Positions 2,713 through 62,234 of a stretch of DNA of 63,561 bases are shown piece after piece. Origin of the DNA: Guillardia theta CCMP2712 (lineage: Eukaryota; Protista; Cryptophyta); contig NW_005434657.1 of NCBI RefSeq assembly GCF_000315625.1, forward strand, positions 182,355-245,915. The letters are read 5' to 3'. A program made the translations under genes and the position numbers. Below the pieces are notes generated by a model that was not told the origin of the DNA, did no database searches, and saw only the letters and a program-made list of their open reading frames with translations. Positions within the stretch are counted from its first letter, which is position 1. Each line of letters begins with the position of its first letter.

Positions 2713-4797
2713 TGAAGAGGAGGAGGACCAGCGTGACGCTCAAAGAACTTGTGAGAACATGCCGCCGATGGTAAGATGAAAAGTTGATATCACTAGATGT
2801 TAGCTGAGGACACTGTAGGGGTAGATCGGGGCCCTCTCTACTAATGGGGCGGAAGGTGAGGAGGGAGGGGCGGAAACTTCACGTGCGATTCGAGGCACGC
2901 GACGATGGAGGGAGAGCGAGGGATCGAGACAAGTTGCGCGACTTCGAGAAGTTTCTCTATCAAAACTTTGGCAATTCTCGCGTGTTTGTGCCCATGAAGA
3001 GTTTTGTCCTGAATTCGCTGAGGGCAACAGGCGTCATGTTGGTTCTGCCCGACAAACTGCTCTTCGCCATCGACGGTGAGCACGAGAATGACCCGACCGT
3101 CTTCTCCGTTGAGCCTCAGAAGGATTTTTCGAAAGTTTGTCTCGGATATGTCATGGGATCTGACAATTTGCCCGCCATGTCGGTGTGTATGAGGTCGTCG
3201 TGGAGGATTCCTGAAGAACTTCGAGAGTTTGGGAGCAACACTCGTTCCGAGCGATGCTGTGACAAGACGTCAATGTTGCGTCATCCTCACCTGCTGATCG
3301 TCTGGAGCTCCAAGAACTTTCAGTCTGAATTGCAAAGTTTTCTGGATGACAACGCGGAGGTGCGGATTGCTCGGGTGGCCGATGGGAATTGTCAGCGTCA
3401 AAGAATGGAAGCATGGTATCGAGCAAGCTCGCCTTTGCCGAGCACACGAGCGAGCTGCAGAGAAGCAGGTGGCGTGCAGGAGGAGGAAGTGATAGAGATC
3501 GACGACGACAGTGAGCATGAAGTGCAAGTTGAGAACAAGGACAACAAGAGGGTTCGACTGGTCTATCCTTCACGCAGTGCAAGGGAATCCGTCACTGTCA
3601 ATGAGACTGACGTGTTGACTTTGCGGGCACGGCAGTACCTCAACGACTCGATTATCGACTTCTATATGAAGTACGTCCAGCACGAGCTGAGCTCTCCAGT
3701 CCAGCAGTCGAGGTATCATGTCTTCGGCAGCTTCTTCTGGAAGCGCATGGAGCAGGAGAGCACCCTCGAGCAGAAGCATACCGCCGTCTGCCGCTGGTAC
3801 AAGTCCATCAACATCTTCGAGCGCGACTTCCTCTTCGTCCCAATCTGCCGGAGCTTGCACTGGACCGTCGCAGTTATCTGCTTCCCTTGCCCCGACAGCG
3901 CTCGTTGCCATCCGAGCCTGCGCGGGGAGAAAGAGGCACGTGACCAGGAGGGTGGAGCCGGGATCCGACAACGATGGAGTAAATATGAGCATACTTTGCT
4001 CTTCTTCGATCCTCTCGGTGGGATGTTGAGCGATGAGGTAAGGGGTGCTTGTCTGCTAGCCCGTCCGCCTTACTGCCTGCCTTACTGCCTCCCTCCCTGC
4101 CTTCCTGCCTCCCTCCCTGCCTTCCTGTCTGTCGTACTGCCAGTATTGATGCCTGCCTGTCTGCTATCTGTCTGGAACATGACAATGAAGGCCAGGGGAG
4201 CGTCTTGTCGGGATTCTTGTTCCACGAGTGGAATCGAAGAGAGGAAGCGCCTTGCTGCCTCCTGTTCCTCTTCCATGACGGGACCATGCAGGAAGCCTCA
4301 CGGGTCGACACCATCAGGGAGCTAAAACCGTACAACATCCCCGTGCCCACCCAGCGCAACTCTTACGACTGCGGTGAAGTGGAGGGAAAACTTGCCCTGC
4401 CCGTTGCTAACGTGGGTCAGGTCTTTTCATCATGGAGTACGTGAGAAAGTTCGTGGAGGACTTTGTTGCAGTCTCAGACGGTCCTTTGCCCCCCCTTCTT
4501 CGAATCTCTTTGCTTCCTCAATTTCTTCGCTCCTCTGGATTGTTCTCCTGCTCCTCTCTCATTCCCTCCCTCGTTGATCCTCTAGTCCTCCTCTTGACCT
4601 CGGTGATCGCAGAGACTTGCTCAGATGCTTACGTCAAGTTCTTCAAGTGGGGCAAGAACCCAGGGTCATGGTTCAGGTAATATGCCCAGAGCGTTGCTTC
4701 ATGACGTGCGTTCGGCAGTTCGGACAACCTGTCAGAAACTCGAAGACAACAAGTGAGGAGTCTGATTTTGAAGTTGAATAAACGACACAAGAAATGA
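2713..4797 (+). CDS. Ulp1/SENP-family SUMO protease (peptidase C48), multi-exon
   Basis: LVYP...DVLTL...YLNDSIIDFYMKY, HVFGSFFW, INIFERDFLFVPI..LHWTVAVI (His), LLFFDPL (Asp), VPTQRNSYDCG|VFIMEY (Gln/Cys). Start is approximate. Confidence 0.9.
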
Positions 4798-4908: not shown

Positions 4909-6198
4909 TCACTTGCTCCATTCGCCACTGTCGGACTTGTGGAGAGGAGGAGCCCTTAGGAGAGGGGGAGGGGGAGCGACGTACTGAGCTGTCTTCGACA
5001 CGTAGTTGCACATCTGCACTACATAATCCTTGGTGCCAAACTCGTTGAAGGTCCTTCCAGCAAGGTCGTATCCGTCCAGGGAGGCCGGGCAGACAGGACC
5101 AGCGATGCCAATGCGCGAATCTGCGTCCACATGCTCCACCGTCGTGAACTTGGCAGGACGGAAGACCTCGAGCACGCGAGCGATCAAGTGGTGGTAGCTG
5201 TCGCACGAGAAGTTGGTCTCGAAGGAGGCGTATGAGCAATGTGCCTCCGGGGTGATGTGAATCGTCCAGTACGAGCTGCCATCGGCCGCCTGCCCATTCA
5301 TCGAGTATCCACATGGCTCGAAGAGATGCGAGTGCACCACTTTGCCATCATGCTCCAACAGCGAAGAGATACCGCTGCGATCCGAGGCTTCGTCCCCAGT
5401 TGCACAAAACTCGCTTTGGTTGCCGAGCTCCTTCGTCTGTTCCTTCTCGACGTTGTTGGAGTCTGCAGAAAAATCTTCGAAGATGGAGGGGATGATCAAA
5501 GGATCTGCCTTCATGAAGTACTGTGCCACTTGGGGGTCGATTCCGTACATGTAGATGTTGAGCATCTGATCGCGATCAACGATCTTCCTGCTGCCGTCCG
5601 GGGTCTCTCGGCGGATGAAATCAGCAACAAAGAGGTACCAGTGATCGGAGCTGAGAGGGCCCATGATGAAGGGCCTTCCAGTAGGAAAATACTCGTGAAG
5701 GAAGTGAACTTCTTGGTCGAAGGATGTATGAGGGAAGCTCTGCTGTTCCGGGAACAAGAAGTTCTTGCGGGAGTACTGGAACCAGCAGACCTCGAGGCCT
5801 ACGTCAGCGCCGGCCTTCATGATGGCTGGAAGAGTCTTCAACAGCAAGGTGGTGCCACAAGTCAAGATGATCACTCTGTCGTTATAGACGAAGAGGGAGG
5901 ACTCGGAGATCAGGTAAGCGTCAAACTTCTCCTGGGGATCCGCCAGAAGGATAGTTCCATTGAGGATGGCCACAATGTCCGACCAGAACTCTCTGTTGTA
6001 TTGACGGAGGCCTCCGTTAATGTCGATGGTGTCAGTATCTCCACCATCCTGCAAGAATGTTAGATGGATTCCAACTCAAAAGAGAGAAAAACATACAATG
6101 GGCCTGAAGTCAATCTCCATTTTCTTCTCGGACCCTTCGAAGCAGAACAACTGGTTGGTCTCGATGATCTCGGGCATGTTGTTGAATTGGGATGGCAT
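4909..6198 (-). CDS. AMD1: S-adenosylmethionine decarboxylase proenzyme (eukaryotic class)
   Basis: Exon 1 MPSQFNN...FEGSEKKMEIDFRPI, intron GTATGT..TTGCAG, then AYLISE/SSLFV autocleavage site, ILTCGTT, QSFPHTSFDQEV, FEPCGYSMNG, TIHITPEAHCSYASFETN. Confidence 0.97.
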
Positions 6199-35985: not shown

Positions 35986-36326
35986 GACAACGTCTCCTGT
36001 CTGGCTCGCCGCTTTTGGCAACACGGTTGGCCGTTACAAACAATGACTTCACGACGGTTACAGACCCGGGCCGCCGCCGCCCCTACTGCTCTTGGTGAAC
36101 TGAGCCTACTAGTGGATTGCGCTGCCTTATCCTTTCTCCGGTTGATTGGCTGAGGCGGATTCGTTTTGGGTATCTCTCTCCTTTTTCGCCAGTCCAATTC
36201 TTTTTTATAGTTTGAACTATAAACCTGACAGAAAACAAATGTGTAGTACATTGTGAATCGGGTGAATCCTACCTAGATCCCATAGCTCTAGCTATATAAT
36301 TCTCAACAAATTATCTTGTTGCTGCT

Positions 36327-38366
36327 ATGGCCAAGAGAGTTCGAGAGCTGGAGGAGGAGACGAGTTCAGCTGTAGAGCAAGAGGCTAGGGGGGTACAAAC
36401 AAAAGTCATCCAAACAGACCAAGCCATCACTGCTGCAGAGCAAGAGATCAAGGGAGTAGTGGAAAAGATCAAGGGAGTAGAGGAAAAGATCAATGGAGTC
36501 GAGGACGAGATCAAGGGAGTAGTGGAAAAGATCAATGGAGTCGAGGACGAGATCAAGGGAGTAGACCAAACCATGGCTGCTGTAGAGCAAGAGATCAGCC
36601 AGGCACAAGACCCCAATATGAAGCCTGTCTTGATCATGAAGCAAACGAAGCTTGCAGGTGAAAAGCAACAGCTTGCGGCCAGAGAGAAACGGCTTGGAGT
36701 TAGAGAGAGACAGCTTAGAGTTAGAGAGAGGCAGCTTCGAGATGACAAGGCAAAGCTTCAAGATAAAGAGGCAAAGCTTCGAGAGGAAATGAAGGAAAAG
36801 AAGCAGGCAGCCTTTACCTGGACAGAGTCAGAAGCTCGGCTTGACGGTATGGGGTTTTGCAAGGAGGAGAAATACTTCCGTCTAGATTGCTCTTACTTAT
36901 GGGGCACAAATGTAAACAGCGGAGAGCATCTTCTTCTCTACTGCCGAAAAGCATTCCTGGAGCAGTTCCGTTTCCTGCAAGAGCAAGTGCTAGAGCAAGG
37001 TGCTCTTGGATGGATACAAGGCTCTCCAGGAACAGGGAAGACAACAACAACGCTTTCGTTTTGTATGAAGCTGGATAGGAATGAGTGGAGCTTCAAATGC
37101 ATCAGGCTGAAGGCCAGAAGCAACACCTGTGTCGTGGAGGTGACAGGCAACAAGAGAAGAACATGCTCTGTCGCAAAGGAGTCTGAGGGGAAGCAGATGA
37201 CACTGTTGCTTGAAGGGTTGTCCGACGGCAAAAAGAGCCTCCTGGTGCTCGATGGCTACTTGACACACCAAGAATCTCACACGAGAGCTTTGGTAGCATG
37301 TATAGGATGGCGGGATGCTGACAGGCAGAATCGACGTCTTATAGTGGTGACGTCAATGGCTTCTCGAGGAAAGGTCTACGATGAAGAGGATCGAGAGATG
37401 GGGCTGAAGGTTCACATAGTGCCATCATGGAGGATCGATGAATATCTAGAGGCAGTGCAGTTTGACGAGTTTTACAACAAGGTGGGAGCCACCTTGGAGA
37501 TGAATGTGACAGGAGAGGCTTTGGGTTTCAAGATGACTACAGGGCCGAAATCGAAAGAAGAGCGAGTGAGACATAAGCATTACCTCGCAGGTGGGTCATG
37601 TCGGTACATGTTCGACATGACTGCGGCGGATGTCCTTCGGTCCTTGGATGTTGCGCTTCAAAGTGCTCCAAACTTACAAGATCTTTTTCGGGGCCATGTA
37701 GGCGCTTCCTCGGGGGATATGACGAACAGGCTGATTGCTACTATGGTAACTCAGGAGAAGGTGGTCTGGTTTCCTGTGAGCAAGTACGTAGCCAGCAATC
37801 TTGCGGCGTCCGTGGGTGCGGTTGACATACTGAGAAGAATGCTGACGGCCTTTAGGGGCCCGCGAGCCATGCATGGGTATCTTTTGGAGATGCTCTTTTT
37901 TGAGGAAGTGAGACGAGACCTGAGCATCACTTACCGTGGATCAAGCGAGCCTGAAGTTTTGAAAGCATGCAATCTCGTTGTAATCTTCGATCCGTCACAA
38001 GACACGGACTCTCTTCCCCACACGAGGGTGTGTCTCAAGCCAATCAGTGAATTTCAAGGTGGCTGGGACGCAATCATTGTAGATCAGGATGACAAGGTCG
38101 TGCAGTTTTTTCAGCTGACGGTTGCAAAGGATCACTCTCTCAAGCTCTCGTATTTCTTGACTGCTCTTGAGGCTCTGGGGGTTCCTGCAGGTGGGACATG
38201 GACGATAAGGATCGTTTTTGTCGTCCCGCCGGAGGATGGAATGTTGTTCCGAATAGCCTCTGTCAAGGATGAAGGAGCGCTAGAGCAGTACATGTGGAAG
38301 AAAGGGGAGGAGAGGTCGATGGTCCAGGTGGCGAGTATTGATTTCAATCGAGGGTTCGTTGGTTAG
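36327..38366 (+). CDS. Crinkler/RHS-type (CR) protein copy 1: coiled-coil header + P-loop NTPase + PD-(D/E)xK-like nuclease
   Basis: Intronless 679 aa. Walker A GSPGTGKT, Walker B LLVLDG, RRLIVVTS, AGGSCRYMF, GYLLEMLF, KPISEFQGGWDAIIV..FFQLTVAKDHSLK. Confidence 0.85.
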   Translation: MAKRVRELEEETSSAVEQEARGVQTKVIQTDQAITAAEQEIKGVVEKIKGVEEKINGVEDEIKGVVEKINGVEDEIKGVDQTMAAVEQEISQAQDPNMKPVLIMKQTKLAGEKQQLAAREKRLGVRERQLRVRERQLRDDKAKLQDKEAKLREEMKEKKQAAFTWTESEARLDGMGFCKEEKYFRLDCSYLWGTNVNSGEHLLLYCRKAFLEQFRFLQEQVLEQGALGWIQGSPGTGKTTTTLSFCMKLDRNEWSFKCIRLKARSNTCVVEVTGNKRRTCSVAKESEGKQMTLLLEGLSDGKKSLLVLDGYLTHQESHTRALVACIGWRDADRQNRRLIVVTSMASRGKVYDEEDREMGLKVHIVPSWRIDEYLEAVQFDEFYNKVGATLEMNVTGEALGFKMTTGPKSKEERVRHKHYLAGGSCRYMFDMTAADVLRSLDVALQSAPNLQDLFRGHVGASSGDMTNRLIATMVTQEKVVWFPVSKYVASNLAASVGAVDILRRMLTAFRGPRAMHGYLLEMLFFEEVRRDLSITYRGSSEPEVLKACNLVVIFDPSQDTDSLPHTRVCLKPISEFQGGWDAIIVDQDDKVVQFFQLTVAKDHSLKLSYFLTALEALGVPAGGTWTIRIVFVVPPEDGMLFRIASVKDEGALEQYMWKKGEERSMVQVASIDFNRGFVG

Positions 38367-41499: not shown

Positions 41500-41553
41500 G
41501 TGTGCACCACCCTCAAACTCACCTATCGGATTCCACAACCACAGCACTGTTCG

Positions 41554-43052
41554 GAATCTATTTGCTTTGCTATTTACCAGATGAACTGTCCCTGTTTCCA
41601 GGCAGATCACAATACAAGCGTTTCATGCAGGTTCTTTCAAAAATAATGATGCCACCGAATCAATCAGCAGCCCCGAGTCCCTCTGACACTGACGAGACCG
41701 CGGAAAGGCATGATGATCATAATGGTATGGATGCAGTGCAGACTGCAGTCACTGCCCATCTGCGTTCACTCGGTTTACAACCAGAGGATCTTGGAAGTCA
41801 CTCTATTAGGAAGGGGGCAGCAACTTATTGTTCATCCGGGAGTACTCACTGTCCATCGAGCAGTGCTGTGTCTGAGCGAGCAGGATGGTCCAATGGAGCA
41901 GTTTTCAACACGTATCTACGATATGAAGCAGCAGGTGATGCATTTGTTGGACGCACTATAACAGGGCCTCCCATCGACTCATCAGAGTTTGCGATTCTTC
42001 CGCCGCATTTCAAAGAAGCTGACTCGTCAGGGATGGTTACAAGTGCGATTGAGATGCTGTTCCCAACATTACCAATGTGCATGTATGGAGTTGCGGAGTT
42101 TGCACTCGCATCCGTGTTATACCATGCAGACTTCCTGAGAACGAATTTGCAGAGGAATCGTCCTCTTTGGAAGTCAACCTTGTTTCAGGACGAAGCTATG
42201 CTGAATACTTTGAAATCAAAGGTTGTTTGCTGCATGCCAAAGGAAGCAAGGGGCAGAATGGAAGCGACAGGCATTCCTCCACACGTTCATCAATATGTCC
42301 ACAATGACAAGGTTATTGCGTCCCTAGAAAAAATACAAAGAGAAGTTCTGGAGTTCAAGCAATCTAGCCGGGGCAACCAGGCATTGGCAGAAGGAGTTTC
42401 GGAGAGGCGACAAGTTGGTTTCGTACCAAATGAGTCTGGACAATCAGCAAAGGATTTCTTTCGCCAAGGCTTGCTAGAGAATCGAGATGAGTTCAAAGCT
42501 ATCATACGGGAGGTGATTATGGAGACGGGAGGGGAAGCAAGTGGATCACAGAGAGATGTTCAGCAAAGGGGCCCCCAGGCTTCGGGTCATAGTGTTGTTG
42601 AGTCTGGTCGCAGGAGTGAGGAGCTGGAAACCCCATTGTCGGCATGGAATTTGTGGTTCTGTGGAAACGAGAAAAAACAAATCCCCCCTTTGAGAAATGT
42701 TTCTGCGGGGGAGTTGAAGCCTGGACAAAGCAATACAAAGCGACGTTCAGACGTGAAGTTTCTCGTGAAATGTTTTGAGCAGCATATGAACAACGTGCTA
42801 GCTGACAAGGATACAGACGAGAGGGATACAGAACTAAGGAGGTTTGAAGAGTTGAAAAGAGCAACCGGAGTCAGGCGCATGCTCAGGGAATCGCAGGAGA
42901 TTTTTGTCAAGTATGAGTCGTCTTTCTACAGTTGGATCAATGTAGACTCGGGCTACACTTTCCGCAGAGGGCAATTGAAATGGAATACATTCGTGAAGAA
43001 GTTAAGGAAAAAATTCAAGAAGAACTCAGGCTCATCTGCATCAAGTCGTTGA
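41554..43052 (+). mobile_element. 5'-truncated Crypton-type tyrosine-recombinase element, copy 1 (block B extends to ~43431)
   Basis: EDLGSHSIRKGAATYCSSGST.CPS..AV..RAGWS.GAV.NTYLRYEAAGD.FVGRT.TG.P....FAILPPHF (H-x-x-R, W, Y of YR; CryptonS-like); later ATGIPPHV and AWNLWFCGN..IPPLR. Confidence 0.88.
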
Positions 43053-43571
43053 GAATAGTCAGGATGATGTTTTCTTTGAACATGGAATAAAAGTACTTGA
43101 ATACGCTGAACGATTGTCGATATTCAGCCATGATCATGGAAGTCAGTGCATTGTTTCCAGAATAACTTTTTGAATTGCTTCGATCAAACGTCCCATGCCA
43201 TGATCAGATGACTACAAGGTTCAGAACTAGCCTACGTCGTAGAGGTTTTCTTCCCTCAAGCCAGGTTCAATGCTGTTTGTTACTCTCATATTGCTTAATT
43301 AGAGAATACAAGGACAGACAATCGATGAAGGACATGATTTCCCTATGTTATGCATTATTTGGTTAGTCAGGAACAAACAGCATACTGAGAACAAGTGCGA
43401 TCTATCTTCCTTCCATCGCCACCGGCATGAATTTTCGCTCAGTCCAATTTATAGTTCAAACTATAAACCTGACAGAAAACAAATGTTTAGTACATTGAAT
43501 CCTACCTAGATCCCATAGCTCGAGCTATATAATTCTCAACAAATTATCTTGTTGCTGCCACTGCCGCTACT

Positions 43572-45677
43572 ATGGCCAAGAGAGTTCGAGAGCTGGAGGA
43601 GGAGGAGACGAGTTCAGCTGTAGAGCAAGAGGCTAGGGGGGTACAAACAAAAGTCATCCAAACAGACCAAGCCATCACTGCTGCAGAGCAAGAGATCAAG
43701 GGAGTAGAGGAAAAGATCAAGGGAGTAGAGGAAAAGATCAAGGGAGTCGAGGACGAGATCAAGGGAGTAGTGGAAAAGATCAATGGAGTCGAGGACGAGA
43801 TCAAGGGAGTAGTGGACGAGATCAAGGGAGTAGACCAAACCATGGCTGCTGTAGAGCAAGAGATCAGCCAGGCACAAGACCCCAATATGAAGCCTGTCTT
43901 GATCATGAAGCAAACGAAGCTTGAAGGTGAAAAGCAACAGCTTGCGGCCAGAGAGAAACGGCTTCGAGGTGACAAGAGACAGCTTGCGGCCAGAGAGAAA
44001 CGACTTGGAGTTAGAGAGAGACAGCTTAGAGTTAAAGAGAGACAGCTTCGAGATGAAGAGGCAAGGCTTCAAGATAAAGAGGCAAAGCTTCGAGAGGAAA
44101 TGAAGGAAAAGAAGCAGGCAGCCTTTACCTGGACAGAGTCAGAAGCTCGGCTTGACGGTATGGGGTTTTGCAAGGAGGAGAAATACTTCCGTCTAGATTG
44201 CTCTTACTTATGGGGCACAAATGTAAACAGCGGAGAGCATCTTCTTCTCTACTGCCGAAAAGCATTCCTGGAGCAGTTCCGTTTCCTGCAAGAGCAAGTG
44301 CTAGAGCATGGTGCTCTTGGATGGATACAAGGCTCTCCAGGAACAGGGAAGACAACAACAACGCTTTCGTTTTGTATGAAGCTGGATAGGAATGAGTGGA
44401 GCTTCAAATGCATCAGGCTGAAGGCCAGAAGCAACACCTGTGTCGTGGAGGTGACAGGCAACAAGAGAAGAACATGCTCTGTCGCAAAGGAGTCTGAGGG
44501 GAAGCAGATGACACTGTTGCTTGAAGGGTTGTCAGACGGCAAAAAGAGCCTCCTGGTGCTCGATGGCTACTTGACACACCAAGAATCTCACACGAGAGCT
44601 TTGGTAGCATGTATAGGATGGCGGGATGCTGACAGGCAGAATCGACGTCTTGTGGTGGTGACGTCAATGGCTTCTCGAGGAAAGGTCTACGATGAAGAGG
44701 ATCGAGAGATGAGGCTGAAGGTTCACATAGTGCCATCATGGAGGATCGATGAATATCTAGAGGCAGTGCAGTTTGACGAGTTTTACAACAAGGTGGGAGC
44801 CACCTTGGAGATGAATGTGACAGGAGAGGCTTTGGGTTTCAAGATGACTACAGGGCCGAGATCGAAAGAAGAGCGAGTGAGACATAAGCACTACCTCGCA
44901 GGTGGGTCATGTCGGTACATGTTCGACATGACTGCGGCGGATGTCCTTCGGTCCTTGGATCTTGCGCTTCAAAGTGCTCCAAACTTACAAGATCTTTTTC
45001 GGGGCCATGTAGGCGCTTCCTCGGGGGATATGACGAACAGGCTGATTGCTACTATGGTAACTCAGGAGAAGGTGGTCTGGTTTCCTGTGAGCAAGTACGT
45101 AGCCAGCAATCTTGCGGCGTCCGTGGGTGCGGTTGACATACTGAGAAGAATGCTGACGGCCTTTAGGGGCCCGCGAGCCATGCATGGGTATCTTTTGGAG
45201 ATGCTCTTTTTCGAGGAAGTGAGAAGAGACCTGAGCATCACTTACCGTGGATCAAGCGAGCCTGAAGTTTTGAAAGCATGCAATCTCGTTGTAATCTTCG
45301 ATCCGTCACAAGACACGGACTCTCTTCCCCACACGAGGGTGTGTCTCAAGCCAATCAGTGAATTTCAAGGTGGCTGGGACGCAATCATTGTAGATCAGGA
45401 TGACAAGGTCGTGCAGTTTTTTCAGCTGACGGTTGCAAAGGATCACTCTCTCAAGCTCTCGTATTTCTTGACTGCTCTTGAGGCTCTGGGGGTTCCTGCA
45501 GGTGGGACATGGACGATAAGGATCGTTTTTGTCGTCCTGCCGGAGGATGGAATGTTGTTCCGAATAGCCTCTGTCAAGGATGAAGGAGCGCTAGAGCAGT
45601 ACATGTGGAAGAAAGGGGAGGAGAGGTCGATGGTCCAGGTGGCGAGTATTGATTTCAATCGAGGGTTCGTTGGTTAG
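43572..45677 (+). CDS. Crinkler/RHS-type protein copy 2 (701 aa)
   Basis: Same motifs as copy 1, with more heptads in the header. Confidence 0.85.
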   Translation: MAKRVRELEEEETSSAVEQEARGVQTKVIQTDQAITAAEQEIKGVEEKIKGVEEKIKGVEDEIKGVVEKINGVEDEIKGVVDEIKGVDQTMAAVEQEISQAQDPNMKPVLIMKQTKLEGEKQQLAAREKRLRGDKRQLAAREKRLGVRERQLRVKERQLRDEEARLQDKEAKLREEMKEKKQAAFTWTESEARLDGMGFCKEEKYFRLDCSYLWGTNVNSGEHLLLYCRKAFLEQFRFLQEQVLEHGALGWIQGSPGTGKTTTTLSFCMKLDRNEWSFKCIRLKARSNTCVVEVTGNKRRTCSVAKESEGKQMTLLLEGLSDGKKSLLVLDGYLTHQESHTRALVACIGWRDADRQNRRLVVVTSMASRGKVYDEEDREMRLKVHIVPSWRIDEYLEAVQFDEFYNKVGATLEMNVTGEALGFKMTTGPRSKEERVRHKHYLAGGSCRYMFDMTAADVLRSLDLALQSAPNLQDLFRGHVGASSGDMTNRLIATMVTQEKVVWFPVSKYVASNLAASVGAVDILRRMLTAFRGPRAMHGYLLEMLFFEEVRRDLSITYRGSSEPEVLKACNLVVIFDPSQDTDSLPHTRVCLKPISEFQGGWDAIIVDQDDKVVQFFQLTVAKDHSLKLSYFLTALEALGVPAGGTWTIRIVFVVLPEDGMLFRIASVKDEGALEQYMWKKGEERSMVQVASIDFNRGFVG

Positions 45678-48805: not shown

Positions 48806-50658
48806 GAATCTATTTGCTTTGCTATTTACCAGATGAACTGTCCCTGTTTCCAGGCAGATCACAATACAAGCGTTTCATGCAGGTTCTTTCAAAAATAATG
48901 ATGCCACCGAATCAATCAGCAGCCCCGAGTCCCTCTGACACTGACGAGACCGCGGAAAGGCATGATGATCATAATGGTATGGATGCAGTGCAGACTGCAG
49001 TCACTGCCCATCTGCGTTCACTCGGTTTACAACCAGAGGATCTTGGAAGTCACTCTATTAGGAAGGGGGCAGCAACTTATTGTTCATCCGGGAGTACTCA
49101 CTGTCCATCGAGCAGTGCTGTGTCTGAGCGAGCAGGATGGTCCAATGGAGCAGTTTTCAACACGTATCTACGATATGAAGCAGCAGGTGATGCATTTGTT
49201 GGACGCACTATAACAGGGCCTCCCATCGACTCATCAGAGTTTGCGATTCTTCCGCCGCATTTCAAAGAAGCTGACTCGTCAGGGATGGTTACAAGTGCGA
49301 TTGAGATGCTGTTCCCAACATTACCAATGTGCATGTATGGAGTTGCGGAGTTTGCACTCGCATCCGTGTTATACCATGCAGACTTCCTGAGAACGAATTT
49401 GCAGAGGAATCGTCCTCTTTGGAAGTCAACCTTGTTTCAGGACGAAGCTATGCTGAATACTTTGAAATCAAAGGTTGTTTGCTGCATGCCAAAGGAAGCA
49501 AGGGGCAGAATGGAAGCGACAGGCATTCCTCCACACGTTCATCAATATGTCCACCATGACAAGGTTATTGCGTCCCTAGAAAAAATACAAAGAGAAGTTC
49601 TGGAGTTCAAGCAATCTAGCCGGGGCAACCAGGCATTGGCAGAAGGAGTTTCGGAGAGGCGACAAGTTGGTTTCGTACCAAATGAGTCTGGACAATCAGC
49701 AAAGGATTTCTTTCGCCAAGGCTTGCTAGAGAATCGAGATGAGTTCAAAGCTATCATACGGGAGGTGATTATGGAGACGGGAGGGGAAGCAAGTGGATCA
49801 CAGAGAGATGTTCAGCAAAGGGGCCCCCAGGCTTCAGGTCATAGTGTTGTTGAGACTGGTCGCAGGAGTGAGGAGCGCACCGTAATATCGCAGGAGTGAG
49901 GAGCGCACCGTAATAATGCTCCCACCGTCACAAATTGGAAGGAAGCCATGAGAGTTCTTCATTATCTCAATCAGACAAAAACCATGGGAATAACTTTTAA
50001 ACGGAATGGAAGTCTAAACTCACCATACCCTGGACTAATTGCATATAGCGATAGCGACTTTGGAGGAGACTCCTCAGATCGTCGCTCAACCATTGGCATC
50101 CTTCTGCAATACAATGGCGCTCCGGCAGACACTGTTGGAGGAAACGAGAGCAGAGACCCGGGTGGTTCTATTGATGAAGCAGCTGGGGAAAGCGCGTCGG
50201 CTCTGGAAGAAGTACTTTTGACAGAAGAGCTGGAAACCCCATTGTCGGCATGGAATTTGTGGTTCTGTGGAAACGAGAAAAAACAAATCCCCCCTTTGAG
50301 AAATGTTTCTGCAGGGGAGTTGAAGCCTGGACAAAGCAATACAAAGCGACGTTCAGACGTGAAGTTTCTCGTGAAATGTTTTGAGCAGCATATGAACAAC
50401 GTGCTAGCTGACAAGGATACAGACGAGAGGGATACAGAACTAAGGAGGTTTGAAGAGTTGAAAAGAGGAACCGGAGTCAGGCGCATGCTCAGGGAATCGC
50501 AGGAGATTTTTGTCAAGTATGAGTCGTCTTTCTACAGTTGGATCAATGTAGACTCGGGCTACAGTTTCCGCAGAGGGCAATTGAAATGGAATACATTCGT
50601 GAAGAAGTTAAGGAAAAAATTCAAGAAGAACTCAGGCTCATCTGCATCAAGTCGTTGA
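48806..50658 (+). mobile_element. Crypton-type YR fragment, copy 2, interrupted by a 354-bp insertion (block B' extends to ~51037)
   Basis: Matches copy 1 except for the insertion after ..GRRSEE. Confidence 0.88.
49877..50230 (+). mobile_element. Ty1/copia RT-RNase H junction fragment inserted in Crypton copy 2
   Basis: NAPTVTNWKEAMRVLHYLNQTKTMGITF...LIAYSDSDFGGDSSDRRSTIGILLQYNGAP; no LTRs. Confidence 0.85.
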
Positions 50659-51177
50659 GAATAGTCAGGATGATGTTTTCTTTGAACATGGAATAAAAGT
50701 ACTTGAATACGCTGAACGATTGTCGATATTCAGCCATGATCATGGAAGTCAGTGCATTGTTTCCAGAATAACTTTTTGAATTGCTTCGATCAAACGTCCC
50801 ATGCCATGATCAGATGACTACAAGGTTCAGAACTAGCCTACGTCGTAGAGGTTTTCTTCCCTCAAGCCAGGTTCAATGCTGTTTGTTACTCTCATATTGC
50901 TTAATTAGAGAATACAAGGACAGACAATCGATGAAGGACATGATTTCCCTATGTTATGCATTATTTGGTTAGTCAGGAACAAACAGCATACTGAGAACAA
51001 GTGCGATCTATCTTCCTTCCATCGCCACCGGCATGAATTTTCGCTCAGTCCAATTTATAGTTCAAACTATAAACCTGACAGAAAACAAATGTTTAGTACA
51101 TTGAATCCTACCTAGATCCCATAGCTCGAGCTATATAATTCTCAACAAATTATCTTGTTGCTGCCACTGCCGCTACT

Positions 51178-53262
51178 ATGGCCAAGAGAGTTCGAGAGCT
51201 GGAGGAGGAGGAGACGAGTTCAGCTGTAGAGCAAGAGGCTAGGGGGGTACAAACAAAAGTCATCCAAACAGACCAAGTCATCACTGCTGCAGAGCAAGAG
51301 ATCAAGGGAGTAGTGGACGAGATCAAGGGAGTAGTGGACGAGATCAAGGGAGTCGAGGACGAGATCAATGGAGTAGTGGAAAAGATCAATGGAGTCGAGG
51401 ACGAGATCAAGGGAGTAGTGGACGAGATCAAGGGAGTAGACCAAACCATGGCTGCTGTAGAGCAAGAGATCAGCCAGGCACAAGACCCCAATATGAAGCC
51501 TGTCTTGATCATGAAGCAAACGAAGCTTGAAGGTGAAAAGCAACAGCTTGCGGCCAGAGAGAAACGGCTTCGAGGTGACAAGAGACAGCTTGGAGTTAGA
51601 GAGAGACAGCTTAGAGTTAAAGAGAGACAGCTTCGAGATGACAAGGCAAAGCTTCGAGATAAAGAGGCAAAGCTTCGAGAGGAAATGAAGGAAAAGAAGC
51701 AGGCAGCCTTTACCTGGACAGAGTCAGAAGCTCGGCTTGACGGTATGGGGTTTTGCAAGGAGGAGAAATACTTCCGTCTAGATTGCTCTTACTTATGGGG
51801 CACAAATGTAAACAGCGGAGAGCATCTTCTTCTCTACTGCCGAAAAGCATTCCTGGAGCAGTTCCGTTTCCTGCAAGAGCAAGTGCTAGAGCATGGTGCT
51901 CTTGGATGGATACAAGGCTCTCCAGGAACAGGGAAGACAACAACAACGCTTTCGTTTTGTATGAAGCTGGATAGGAATGAGTGGAGCTTCAAATGCATCA
52001 GGCTGAAGGCCAGAAGCAACACTTGTGTCGTGGAGGTGACAGGCAACAAGAGAAGAACATGCTCATTCGCAAAGGAGTCTGAGGGGAAACAGATGACACT
52101 GTTGCTTGAAGGGTTGTCAGACGGCAAAAGGAGCCTCGTGGTACTCGATGGCTACTTGACACACCAAGAATCTCACATGAGAGCTTTGGTAGCTTGTATC
52201 AGATGGCGGGATGCTGACAGGCAGAATCGACGTCTTGTGGTGGTGACGTCAATGGCTTCTCGAGGAAAGGTCTACGATGAAGAGGATCGAGAGTTGAGGC
52301 TGAAGGAGCACATAGTCCCATCATGGAGGATCGATGAATATCTAGAGGCAGTGCAGTTTGACGAGTTTTACAATAAGGTGGCTCCCACCTTGGAGATGAA
52401 TGCGACAGGAGAGGCTTTGGGTTTCAAGATGACTACACGGCCGAGATCGAAAGAAGAGCGAGTGAGACATAAGCACTACCTCGCAGGTGGGTCATGTCGG
52501 TACATGTTCGACATGACTGCGGCGGAGGTCCTTCGGTCCTTGGATGTTGCGCTTCTATGTGCTCCAAACTTACAAGATCTTTTTCGGGGCCATGTAGGCG
52601 CTTCCTCGGGGGATATGACGAACAGGCTGATTGCTACTATGGTCACTCAGGAGAAGGTGGTCAGGTTTCCTGTGAGCAAGTACGTAGCCAGCAATCTTGC
52701 GGCGTCCGCGGGTGCGGTTGACATGCTGAGAAGAATGTTGACGGCCTTTAGAGGCCTGCGAGCCATGCATGGGTATCTTTTGGAGATGCTCTTTTTCGAG
52801 GAAGTGAGACGAGACCTGAGCATAACTTACCGTGGATCGAGTGAGCCTGAAGTTTTGAAAGCATGCAATCTCGTTGTAATCTTCGATCCGTCACAAGACA
52901 CGGACTCTCTTCCCCACACGAGGGTGTGTCTCAAGCCTATCAGTGAATTTCAAGGTGGCTGGGACGCAATCATTGTAGATCAGGATGACAAGGTCGTGCA
53001 GTTTTTTCAGCTGACGGTTGCGAAGGATCACTCTCTCAAGCTCTCGTATTTCTTGACTGCTCTTAAGGCTCTGGGGATTCCTGCAGGTGAGATATGGACG
53101 ATAAGGATCGTTTTTGTCGTCCCGCCGGAGGATGGAATGTTGTTCCGAATAGCCTCTGTCAAGGATGAAGGAGCGCTAGAGCAGTACATGTGGAAGAAAG
53201 GGGAGGAGCGGTCGATGGTCCAGGTGGCGAGTATTGATTTCAATCGAGGGTTCGTTGGTTAG
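51178..53262 (+). CDS. Crinkler/RHS-type protein copy 3 (694 aa, most divergent)
   Basis: Same motifs; many private substitutions. Confidence 0.85.
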   Translation: MAKRVRELEEEETSSAVEQEARGVQTKVIQTDQVITAAEQEIKGVVDEIKGVVDEIKGVEDEINGVVEKINGVEDEIKGVVDEIKGVDQTMAAVEQEISQAQDPNMKPVLIMKQTKLEGEKQQLAAREKRLRGDKRQLGVRERQLRVKERQLRDDKAKLRDKEAKLREEMKEKKQAAFTWTESEARLDGMGFCKEEKYFRLDCSYLWGTNVNSGEHLLLYCRKAFLEQFRFLQEQVLEHGALGWIQGSPGTGKTTTTLSFCMKLDRNEWSFKCIRLKARSNTCVVEVTGNKRRTCSFAKESEGKQMTLLLEGLSDGKRSLVVLDGYLTHQESHMRALVACIRWRDADRQNRRLVVVTSMASRGKVYDEEDRELRLKEHIVPSWRIDEYLEAVQFDEFYNKVAPTLEMNATGEALGFKMTTRPRSKEERVRHKHYLAGGSCRYMFDMTAAEVLRSLDVALLCAPNLQDLFRGHVGASSGDMTNRLIATMVTQEKVVRFPVSKYVASNLAASAGAVDMLRRMLTAFRGLRAMHGYLLEMLFFEEVRRDLSITYRGSSEPEVLKACNLVVIFDPSQDTDSLPHTRVCLKPISEFQGGWDAIIVDQDDKVVQFFQLTVAKDHSLKLSYFLTALKALGIPAGEIWTIRIVFVVPPEDGMLFRIASVKDEGALEQYMWKKGEERSMVQVASIDFNRGFVG

Positions 53263-58339: not shown

Positions 58340-61300
58340 AACCTGAGGCCCGATGATGAGCTCCTTGACCTCATTGAGGGAGAGATGACGAGTCTCCACC
58401 TGCCCAGCCATGAGCAGCAAACGGAGGAAGGAAAGAGGGGGGGAGGAAATGAAGTGTTGGAGGAGGAGAAGAGGAGAAGTGGAGGACCAGAAGGGTAAGA
58501 GTAAAGATGGTGGAGATTATGGGAGAGGAGGAGAGGAGGTCAAGAACGAGTGGCAAGAGGGCGAGGAGAGTGAAAGGAGAGCGAAACGATGATCAAAGAG
58601 CATGAAAGGAGGAGGAAGCTCATCCTCTGACCTCGTTAACTGCACAAAGAGAGTCGCCAAGCTTCACCAGATCCGTCCTGACAAGAAACCAGATCAAAGG
58701 AGGATCGGAGAGCAGAAGAGGAGGGGAGGAAGGAAGCGGGGGAGAGTGGAAGGGAAGAAAGGTGAGAAACGAGACAGAAAGGAAGCAGAAAAAGAACAGG
58801 TAGAAGATCAGGGTAAGACATTGTATGAGAGTTTACCTCAATCTTCCATCATCTGCAGAGACGAGAGCTTGAATGTAGAGGACGGAGAAAGGAAAGTGTT
58901 CCTCTGACAAGAGAACATTCAGATGGTAGGGAGAGGAATGAAGGGATGATTAAGAGAAAAGATAACCTATCCTCATTCCAACTCCTTTCCAACTGCAAAG
59001 AGAAACATGGGTCATGTTCCTTCATGTCAAGTCCCATACCGCCAACCTCCTGCGAAGAGCGACGCTTGCTGACTGCACTTCCCGTAGTCTCCTCTCTGCT
59101 TCTGCAATCTTTTGTCGACAGTCAACCCCTCTTGTTTGCTGTCGAACAAAACATCGCCCTCACTTTGTTGTTGCCCATCATTGCTTCGTTCCTCATGTTG
59201 GCGATCTCCCGAGCAAGCGCAAGATCTGCAGTGAGCAAATCTTCCTGTGATGACAAAGGGGAGAGTGAGCTCAGACAGGCTGAAGGTGACGCTGCTACCG
59301 TCTTCCTTGCTACGAGATCGTTCTCGTTGTTCCTCAGGATCATCTCTTGCCTCTGTTCAGAATGTCTCATCTCAACATCAGTTGGAGGTGTAAGCAGCGG
59401 CAAACCTCGAGCTGTTTCCGAGACTGCAATGAAGTTTCCTTCTCCAGCCTTTTCCTCAACTCTGCATGAAGCCTTCAGTCAGACCTCCTACCACAAGAGC
59501 AGAATCACCTTCTGCCTCCGCCTTGCTCGCTCTCAGCTCCTCTTCTAGGGTCCTTCGTGCCTGCAACTGCCCGCGAGCAAAGAGGTCAGGAAGAGGTTGC
59601 CGCAAGAAAGCACAGAAATGCAACGAAGCATCAACGATTCGGGGGCAAACAAGAAGGATTGCTCGATGACAAGGAGCGATCACAAGTCAAGTCATGAGAA
59701 ACCAGAAGCAAGATGAAGAAGAGTTCTGCTTGCTGACCTCCAGCTCAGCTTGTCTCCCAGACTCCATCGCCATCTTCATAAGCCGCTCATTCTCATTTTC
59801 CATCTTCTGCTTCTCAAGCTTCTGCTCCTCCTCCATCCTAGTGATCCGGTCGGAAAGATCGTCGAAACGTTTCAATAGGGTGGACAGCATCTCCTCGTCA
59901 AACACAGTTCCAAGACACTGACTGGTCCCATCATGATACAACTTCCTTGCTGCCTCTACCTTGCCCGACATCAGAAGGTCATCAGCTTCTTGTACGAGAC
60001 CATCTAGCCACGACATCAATGATTCGCGAGCCTTTAGTTGCTCCTCCTCCTCGATCTGCCCCGCCAGCGCCTTCAGCTCCCTCTGCTTGTCTGCACCGGC
60101 CTTCTCGTACTCGCTCGTTGCCTGCCGTACAAGCTCCCGTGCTGCCTCTACCTCCCCTGACCCCAGCGCTGTCTCCGCCTTCTTCATCAGCTCGTCTCCC
60201 TCCTTCACAAGCGCCGCCCGCCTCCTCGCCTCCTCTGCCTCCTCGATCTGCCCCGCCAGCGCCTTCAGCTCCCTCTGCTTGTCTGCACCGGCCTTCTCGT
60301 ACTCGCTCGTTGCCTGCCGTACAAGCTCCCGTGCTGCCTCTACCTCCCCTGACCCCAGCGCTGTCTCCGCCTTCTTCATCAGCTCGTCTCCCTCCTTCAC
60401 AAGTGCCGCCCGCCTCCTCGCCTCCTCTGCCTCCTCGATCTGCCCCGCCAGCGCCTTCAGCTCCCTCTGCTTTGTCTGCACCGGCCTTCTCGTACTCGCT
60501 CGTTGCCTGCCGTACAAGCTCCCGTGCTGCCTCTACCTCCCCTGACCCCAGCGCTGTCTCCGCCTTCTTCATCAGCTCGTCTCCCTCCTTCACAAGCGCC
60601 GCCCGCCTCCTCGCCTCCTCTGCCTCCTCGATCTGCCCCGCCAGCGCCTTCAGCTCCCTCTGCTTGTCTGCACCGGCCTTCTCGTACTCGCTCGTTGCCT
60701 GTCGTACAAGCTCCCGTGCTGCCTCTACCTCCCCTGACCCCAGCGCTGTCTCCGCCTTCTTCATCAGCTCGTCTCCCTCCTTCACAAGCGCCGCCCGCCT
60801 CCTCGCCTCCTCTGCCTCCTCGATCTGCCCCGCCAGCGCCTTCAGCTCCCTCTGCTTGTCTGCACCGGCCTTCTCGTACTCGCTCGTTGCCTGTCGTACA
60901 AGCTCCCGTGNNNNNNNNNNNNNNNNNNNNNNNNNNNNNNNNNNNNNNNNNNNNNNNNNNNNNNNNNNNNNNNNNNNNNNNNNNNNNNNNNNNNNNNNNN
61001 NNNNNNNNNNNNNNNNNNNNNNNNNNNNNNNNNNCAGCTCCCTCTGCTTGTCTGCACCGGCCTTCTCGTACTCGCTCGTTGCCTGCCGTACAAGCTCCCG
61101 TGCTGCCTCTACCTCCCCTGACCCCAGCGCTGTCTCCGCCTTCTTCATCAGCTCGTCTCCCTCCTTCACAAGCGCCGCCCGCCTCCTCGCCTCCTCTGCC
61201 TCCTCGATCTGCCCCGCCAGCGCCTTCAGCTCCCTCTGCTTGTCTGCACCGGCCTTCTCGTACTCGCTCGTTGCCTGTCGTACAAGCTCCCGTGCTGCCT

Positions 61301-62234
61301 CTACCTCCCCTGACCCCAGCGCTGTCTCCGCCTTCTTCATCAGCTCGTCTCCCTCCTTCACAAGCGCCGCCCGCCTCCTCGCCTCCTCTGCCTCCTCGAT
61401 CTGCCCCGCCAGCGCCTTCAGCTCCCTCTGCTTGTCTGCACCGGCCTTCTCGTACTCGCTCGTTGCCTGCCGTACAAGCTCCCGTGCTGCCTCTACCTCC
61501 CCTGACCCCAGCGCTGTCTCCGCCTTCTTCATCAGCTCGTCTCCCTCCTTCACAAGCGCCGCCCGCCTCCTCGCCTCCTCTGCCTCCTCGATCTGCCCCG
61601 CCAGCGCCTTCAGCTCCCTCTGCTTGTCTGCACCGGCCTTCTCGTACTCGCTCGTTGCCTGCCGTACAAGCTCCCGTGCTTCTTCAAGTTGTTCATTCTG
61701 AAGTGCTACCTGTGCCTTGTTTACAAGTTTGTCTGCATTGGAGATCATTTCCATAGTTGCCATTTGTTCTTCTTTGGCCTTGAGATCATGCAGGAGCTGT
61801 TTGAAGGACAGCTGCAGCTCTTCAGAGTACTTGCCAAGGTTGTCTTCTTCCTTGTCGTAGATCTTCTGTGCCAACTTCAACTTCCCGCTATAAATGTGTT
61901 CCTGAGCAGCAGCGAGAGCTTGTTTGGCTGCCTTTTCCATCTGTTCCTGTTCACTGTCCTGCTTCTTCACAAATTCCATAGCTCGGTCTTTTGCATTCAC
62001 ATCAGATGTAAGAGATCCCAACTCTCTCATTCTCTCCTGTTTGGTGACGAGGTTCGAAGCTTCCTCTTCCGCTTGGAACTCGCTTGCCCTCTCCTTCGCC
62101 TTCACCGAGGAAGTGAGAGACTCTACTTCCGCCATGCGATCACTCTTGTTCTCATTCGCATCCTCTCCTTCTTCCTTCCGCCATTCCGAGCGCTTTGGCG
62201 CCCACTTTTTCCCCTTCTTTGAACTATCTGCCAT
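58340..62234 (-). CDS. Large helical protein with ~8-9 near-identical 64-aa repeats; multi-exon C-terminus; one frameshift at ~60471
   Basis: ORF 62234->60471 continues in the frame of the 59687 ORF; further exons to ~58340; N gap inside the array. Confidence 0.75.
60047..61680. repeat. 192-bp coding tandem repeat
   Basis: Motif CCGCCAGCGCCTTCAGCTCC recurs at 60061 and 60253 (period 192). Confidence 0.95.

Follow-up and report, generated by a model that had tools for sequence, protein, structure and literature searches.

Tyrosine-recombinase sites such as loxP, FRT and dif consist of inverted arms of 11–13 bp around an asymmetric spacer of 6–8 bp. Template switching between short inverted repeats produces spacer inversions and multinucleotide changes (PMC8604942; PMC5453318). 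Among DNA transposons with a tyrosine recombinase (YR), the CryptonS elements have, in the relevant passages of their description, terminal direct repeats of 5–6 bp, mostly TATGG, and a recombinase with a conserved C-terminal region as their sole enzyme (PMC3212892; Kojima and Jurka, 2011). Those passages report only one non-autonomous Crypton family and contain no word built on 'palindrom'. Within the collection of papers that was searched, no description of Cryptons in Guillardia theta was found.

We analysed a window of 63,561 nucleotides from the cryptophyte G. theta CCMP2712 (contig NW_005434657.1), in which three palindromes head three tandem units of ~7.3–7.6 kb each. The first palindrome (w1; 36204..36223, + strand) reads TTTATAGTT-TG-AACTATAAA, that is, the 20-mer TTTATAGTTTGAACTATAAA, while the second (w2; 43448..43467, +) and third (w3; 51054..51073, +) read TTTATAGTT-CA-AACTATAAA, the 20-mer TTTATAGTTCAAACTATAAA; the central dinucleotides are exact reverse complements. 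With the two central bases left free and up to two mismatches allowed, these three are the only matches in the window, and 100 shuffles of the window gave none (≤2 mismatches). The 87-Mb nuclear genome contains 12 sites at ≤1 mismatch and none for a reversed control pattern. A metagenome scan for the palindrome returned unrelated TTTAAA-centred palindromes only.

An earlier note on this DNA had placed the 20-mer at these three positions with reverse-complement cores, ~20 bp inside the duplication boundary, and both observations are borne out: homology between unit 1 and units 2 and 3 begins ~17–21 bp upstream of the palindrome, at 36183–36186. The genome search that the note had proposed links the motif to mobile elements, as the 12 sites mark Crypton ends genome-wide. 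Its statement that the site directly follows the Crypton block in copies 2 and 3 is correct insofar as the palindrome follows a recombinase-derived block, but the palindrome lies inside the element, which continues for another 58 bp.

The palindrome is a subterminal part of a CryptonS-like YR DNA transposon of G. theta. It sits within the last ~78 bp of the element, with 58 bp between its end and the 3′ terminus ...CCCATAGCTCTAC. The reference copy (C50b) is 3,537 bp long, carries one intact YR open reading frame (ORF) of 706 aa at L012:5415–7535 on the minus strand, and begins with ACTTATAGTAC... (ACTTATAGTACTTTGGGAGG...). The genomic palindromes are preceded by the 3′ portion of a repeat that codes for the recombinase (...catgaattttcgctcagtccaa) and followed by the 58 bp to the terminus, beyond which the loci diverge; the flanks on both sides of the palindrome are homologous across 12 or more loci. 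The 5′ end is defined by copies C50b, C502 and C269, which have the same end and unrelated left flanks, and the 3′ end is common to C2, C50a, C50b and others, with differing right flanks. The existence of copies with unrelated flanks implies that the element has been mobile.

The 58-bp tail could also have been a pre-existing target beside which Cryptons dock. This was dropped as the main reading, because pairwise divergence upstream of the palindrome is correlated with that downstream (r = 0.84) and because C2, C50a and C50b have variants in common on both sides of the centre while their right flanks differ. These observations indicate that the tail is part of the element and not its target.

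From its homologs, conserved residues and predicted structure, the 706-aa product is identified as a predicted tyrosine recombinase. It has homologs in oomycetes, diatoms and cryptophytes, some of them named integrase or Ndc10-domain protein. In an alignment of 34 sequences R109, K136, H248, R251, W277 and Y286 are invariant or nearly so, in agreement with the catalytic set R..K..HxxR..[H/W]..Y of these enzymes. A Pfam search of the protein gave no hit. The top fold matches of its AlphaFold model (pLDDT 78) are Cre, Flp, XerH and Ndc10, with a probability of ~1 and E values of 0.015–0.03. The 3,537-bp reference copy contains neither a reverse transcriptase nor a DDE transposase, and other enzyme families were not detected in it. 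The element lacks long terminal repeats; TATAG occurs 3 nt in from the 5′ terminus and CATAG 6 nt in from the 3′ terminus, and the ends themselves have only AC or TAC in common. The genome shows no enrichment of ACTTATAGCTCTAC, a putative empty target, which was therefore dropped as a specific target. An 84-bp mini-copy with unique flanks is present in C269 (locus L018, about 4953–5036; 5′ motif at C269:42368–42395). Internally deleted, it has 42 bp of the 5′ end directly abutting the final 42 bp of the 3′ end, which helps to define the element ends, and it could be either a non-autonomous derivative or a deletion in place.

Within the window, two 5′-truncated Crypton copies lie between three tandem copies of a gene for a coiled-coil/P-loop NTPase. 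The first Crypton copy (41554..43524, +) and the second (48806..51130, +) both include the palindrome and the 3′ end, so that the terminus ...CCCATAGCTCTAC is found at 43524 and 51130. Both begin part-way through the recombinase gene, at residue ~165, lack the first catalytic arginine, and are dead fragments. They also differ by indels at the same spot (42618–42624 vs 49890–50122), with a 114-bp internal deletion in the first copy, as compared with the reference copy, and ~230 bp of extra internal sequence in the second. Their truncation point corresponds to the position at which unit 3 ceases to match units 1 and 2 (57028). The array seams were considered as look-alikes of the element ends and rejected, with no convincing similarity at 41553/41554 or 57028. 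Before gene copy 1 stands a solo 3′-terminal Crypton module of ~100 bp (36183..36291, +; ending in ...CATAGCTCTAG). It opens with ~17 bp similar to the last part of the element body, which are followed by the palindrome and by the 58-bp tail with an 11-bp insertion.

The three genes are gene copy 1 (36327..38366, +; 679 aa), whose ATG lies 36 bp after the Crypton tail module, gene copy 2 (43572..45677, +; 701 aa) and gene copy 3 (51178..53262, +; 694 aa). Each ORF starts ~105–125 bp after its palindrome and encodes a long N-terminal coiled coil and a P-loop NTPase with a Walker-A P-loop. The closest database proteins are GUITHDRAFT hypothetical proteins of G. theta CCMP2712. The gene family has at least 60 genomic matches, and its proteins combine a coiled coil, a P-loop NTPase and a conserved C-terminal domain. 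A fold model of the gene product, of low confidence, consists of a coiled coil and an AAA+/STAND-like NTPase and resembles coiled-coil NLR/AAA+ proteins; a nuclease that might cut the palindrome was sought in this neighbouring gene, and the model yielded only these two parts, with its C-terminal domain left unassigned.

The tandem units have exchanged sequence. Between units 2 and 3 there is no difference over 713 bp, of which 489 bp precede the palindrome start and 224 bp extend from it to the right. Informative sites reveal unit 2 as a mosaic, in which the first ~250 bp match unit 3 and the remainder matches unit 1, a signature of unequal crossing-over or gene conversion. The 5′ coding part contains 21-bp tandem units, corresponding to coiled-coil heptads, whose number differs among the gene copies (36415–36735, 43663–44025 and 51269–51631), and unit 2 switches from its unit 3-like part to its unit 1-like part within or close to these repeats. 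An inverted paralog just upstream of the window (C17up; C17:176.5 kb) has the left flank of unit 1 together with the 11-bp insertion of the tail, and has lost the left arm, while another paralog (C209), whose protein is 92% identical, has the same left flank and no recognisable tail module. Downstream of the gene array, 59895–61731 is made of tandem units of ~192 bp with strongly negative GC and AT skew.

Since the arms are symmetric, the orientation of the centre is meaningful only relative to the flanks, and all copies were oriented by the tail. As read from a single assembly, the centre is TG in 10 of the 12 near-exact copies (w1, C48, C91, C163, C252, C2, C45, C50a, C50b and C372) and CA in w2 and w3 only. 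The partial copies C216, C17up and C48b also have TG, as do all six copies of a sister subfamily, in which the homologous sequence, CA[T/A]TTATGTGGTGAACAATAAAAATGACAG, is non-palindromic. Judged from these sequences, TG is the ancestral state of the family, the orientation of w1, and CA a single derived event, an inverted centre inherited by copies 2 and 3. Because CA is confined to w2 and w3, which are perfectly identical over the 713 bp and thus identical by descent at this site, it counts as one inherited event.

A second case is suggested by C174, which has two tandem tail modules reading TTTATAGCTCAAAACTATAAA. Its palindrome, TTTATAG-CTCAAA(A)-CTATAAA, can be set beside TTTATAG-TTTGAG-CTATAAA of C372: the centres are reverse complements, the arm mismatch is on the opposite arm, and C174 has an extra A. 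The sister relation of the two is assumed from few characters, namely a common poly-A variant and an AGCTT change, and with this assumption C174 is suggestive of a second, apparently independent flip, of the kind that a six-base inversion predicts. Two flips were thus found in ~20 copies, with that in the window inherited and not recurrent.

The palindrome can be read in three ways: as perfect 9-bp arms with a 2-bp centre, as 7-bp arms around the 6-bp spacer TTTGAA, or as 13-bp arms, matching at 10 of 13 positions, around the 6-bp spacer (GTCCAATTTATAG-TTTGAA-CTATAAACCTGAC). As a hairpin it has an 8-bp stem and a 4-nt loop, and the TG and CA forms fold equally. In the lineage of copies 2 and 3, the centre has been replaced by its exact reverse complement between intact arms with the flanks unchanged, the pattern expected of a spacer inversion. 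We propose that the centre was TG first and that CA would have arisen once, in the common ancestor of the modules that precede gene copies 2 and 3, by template switching within the palindrome during replication, which would have turned the 4-nt loop from TTGA into TCAA. The flip would then be an inversion of the spacer, and neither a recombinase reaction nor two separate point mutations, and unequal crossing-over or gene conversion would have copied CA between units. Hairpin template switching is the most likely mechanism and accounts for both the window and the C174 cases. Against it stand the weakness of the hairpin (−3.4 kcal/mol), the additional 1-nt insertion needed for C174, and the possibility that a pair of neighbouring transitions (T>C, G>A) imitated an inversion. 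The perfect palindrome here, as compared with the quasi-palindrome of the sister subfamily, is also compatible with homogenisation of the arms by template switching. As a whole, we consider it rather probable that the locus is explained by a palindrome in a Crypton tail whose centre was flipped by template switching, with a role of the arms as binding half-sites as a lesser component.

This lesser component, a role of the palindrome in recombinase binding or as an alternative terminus, is plausible from the sequence, although we would place it somewhat below an even chance. The arms would be putative recombinase-binding or terminus-like half-sites, which would explain why solo and truncated copies begin or end there. 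In the 3.5-kb element, the 7-mer TTATAGT occurs at the 5′ terminus, in the right arm of the palindrome and at one other internal position only; in C50b, the only intact copy, the left arm is TCTATAGTT, with an uncompensated T>C, and the exact 7-mer is missing from that arm. The solo tail modules C163, C45, C372 and C174, which belong to two sequence subgroups, start 0–3 nt before TTTATAG, and this offset is that of the boundary of the full element before CTTATAG; the solo modules C48 and w1 start 22 and 17 nt before TTTATAG. Element bodies without a tail break at −10 (C52/C564), −2 (C25) and +13 (C216), the last exactly after TTTATAG-TTTGAA, and tails without the left arm begin at ~+5 and +8/9. 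Since the probes used to collect the loci came from the 3′ end, a general series of 5′ truncations carries no weight, but the pile-up of breakpoints within ~35 bp of a 3.5-kb element is not accounted for by probe sampling. The match of TTATAGT to the 5′ terminus, the starts of the solo modules and the breaks of the tail-less bodies together suggest that the palindrome is more than a product of chance.

Other observations weigh against such a role. A core site would be expected at the junctions of the integrated element or at the circle junction, but the palindrome is separated from the 3′ end by 58 bp, a single half-site is all that the 5′ end has, and a junction of the 3′ and 5′ ends would not be palindromic. 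A conserved palindrome was sought in other Crypton subfamilies and not found: the sister subfamily, as read from pattern matches, has the homologous, non-palindromic sequence TTATGTGGTGAACAATAA in its place (G000:C5:165771, C46:22876, C60:116538, C147:2126, C318:15538 and C502:1783), no palindrome of this kind follows the ORF in the C34/C79 subfamily or in others, and another Crypton subfamily has a homologous 5′ end and an unrelated 3′ end without such a palindrome. At one locus of another subfamily (L025; G000:C34, about 5150–5250), an inverted copy of the 3′ terminal TGACTGTGCTGTG occurs in the flank, with a second, direct copy ~45 bp further on. The earlier note had left two readings side by side, a recombination site and a hairpin microinversion. 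The microinversion fits the distribution of centres best, with TG in 10 of 12 copies and CA as one event, while the recombination site draws indirect support from the arm motif at the 5′ terminus and from the breakpoints and is opposed by its distance from the end and the lack of a palindrome in related subfamilies.

The binding role can be taken further, in that the palindrome would be the recombinase's own recognition site, used as an alternative end. Its use would generate the 78-bp solo modules and the truncated copies, would repeatedly put them in front of coiled-coil NTPase genes and others, to which they would act as a portable 5′ module, and might be the origin of arrays of gene, Crypton and gene such as that in the window. 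We regard this fuller scenario as rather doubtful.

The position of the tail modules relative to genes raises a different explanation, in which the palindrome is chiefly the site of a dimeric transcription factor in a promoter module, which the Crypton tail would supply to downstream genes or have borrowed from them, with the orientation of the centre being neutral. In 12 of 17 loci, the module lies 46–334 bp upstream of a long ORF on the same strand (for example L017 at C17:818.7 kb, L006 at C91 and L008 at C252), and these are not NTPase genes alone. Coiled-coil NTPase genes follow it in 8 loci, where the paralogs can be as low as 32–37% identical in protein while the module stays 84–93% identical, and two modules of the sister subfamily (C147 and C502) also stand upstream of genes of the NTPase family. 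On sequence, this placement may reflect repeated insertion upstream of genes, or a portable 5′ region and promoter donation. However, only a small minority of the 60 or more family genes carry the module, C209 has none recognisable despite its 92% identical protein and the same left flank, and the module co-evolves with the Crypton body. A primarily regulatory role of the palindrome is accordingly unlikely. Just upstream of the ATG, two paralogs of the NTPase family, L029 (C502; 1430–1470) and L031 (C209; about 3880–3910), have the motif ccttgtttgctccggtttgcc, which bears a weak resemblance to ttttcgctcagtccaa, the 16 bp with which the Crypton body ends ahead of the palindrome.

Template switching is not the only process by which the centre could have been inverted. 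If the palindrome were an active core site of a tyrosine recombinase, symmetric sites could have synapsed in the wrong alignment, and mismatch repair of the resulting TG/CA heteroduplex would have flipped the centre. The family has an intact recombinase gene at C50b, the arms are symmetric and surround a 6-bp spacer in the 7-bp and 13-bp (10/13) layouts, pairing in the wrong alignment would be expected to leave only two G–T wobble mismatches, and homology breaks at +13, +8/9 and +5, in or beside the spacer. Yet a completed crossover swaps the flanks and cannot reverse the core with both flanks kept, so that the inverted centre is no evidence for recombinase action; the recombination-site reading draws on other evidence than that which the earlier note used. 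Further, head-to-head products (body, palindrome and inverted body) are absent among ~20 loci, and only two flips among ~20 copies, that in the window being inherited, do not suggest recurrent activity. We therefore judge an inversion by the recombinase to be distinctly unlikely.

Two independent, adjacent point substitutions could also imitate an inversion. Both changes are transitions and the copies differ elsewhere by ~2–3%, but outside the centre no more than two substitutions and one indel in ~76 bp set module 1 apart from module 2, and we estimate the chance that both bases change to the exact complement at ~1e-4 at that divergence. Intermediates with CG or TA centres are absent among the 12 genomic matches, and the switch of the arm mismatch between sides in C174 and C372 is not predicted by substitutions. 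Separate substitutions are thus very unlikely. A related candidate, the decay of a CpG whereby TG and CA would both derive from a CG centre, was dropped, as neither CG nor TA centres exist among those matches. An assembly or sequencing artefact that made one of the core states is scarcely credible: copies 2 and 3 do fall in a block of perfect identity in a tandem array that is hard to assemble, but ten other loci back TG, CA occurs twice in otherwise distinct units, and a base-calling error that gives an exact two-base reverse complement is improbable.

With an inversion by template switching as the preferred reading, the palindrome provides, from outside the model organisms, a clean example of a spacer inverted in a hairpin, a change open to confusion with the work of a recombinase. 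If this is a mere mutational curiosity in the tail of a dead transposon, the finding is an ordinary one. If the palindrome is a recognition site, it would be the first candidate cis site for any Crypton. A testable candidate is available, since the 20-bp palindrome with its 5′-terminal arm motif and the intact recombinase gene of C50b exist in the same genome, and natural variants (TG, CA, arm mutants and solo modules) could serve as substrates.

Among known systems, the Helitron 3′ subterminal hairpin is similar in being a short palindrome near the 3′ end, with many copies that have the same 3′ end. This comparison was rejected, as the element lacks a Rep/helicase gene, its hairpin stands 58 bp from the terminus as against about 10 bp, and that terminus is CTAC and not CTRR. 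Like loxP, FRT and dif, the palindrome has inverted arms, a short, nearly symmetric spacer with an asymmetric centre and an adjoining recombinase gene, and its extended layout appears close to the canonical recombinase geometry. Unlike them, this candidate site has perfect arms of 7–9 bp (13 bp only at 10/13), occurs once per element, 58 bp inside the end, and is not conserved in sister subfamilies.

The element itself is closest to CryptonS, as far as the consulted passages describe it (PMC3212892). In common are a single YR gene with a conserved C-terminal extension, the absence of a reverse transcriptase and of long terminal repeats, a low copy number, recombinase homologs in oomycetes and diatoms, and a short [T/C]ATAG motif near both ends, which recalls the 5–6-bp repeats. 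In contrast to CryptonS as described there, this element lives in a cryptophyte, its repeat-like motifs are set back from the mapped ends, and a perfect 9+9-bp palindrome lies 58 bp from the 3′ end, in a 78-bp tail that also occurs alone. The flip has its closest counterpart in published template-switch spacer inversions (PMC8604942; PMC5453318), with which it has in common near-perfect arms, an exact reverse-complement centre, the change of several bases in one event and, if C174 and C372 are sister copies, an arm mismatch that moves to the other arm. It differs from them in lying inside the end module of a transposon and in being deduced from paralogous copies, and not from an orthologous phylogeny or reads. 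What is new is thus a CryptonS-like element in G. theta and a spacer inversion within it, each of a kind that is already known.
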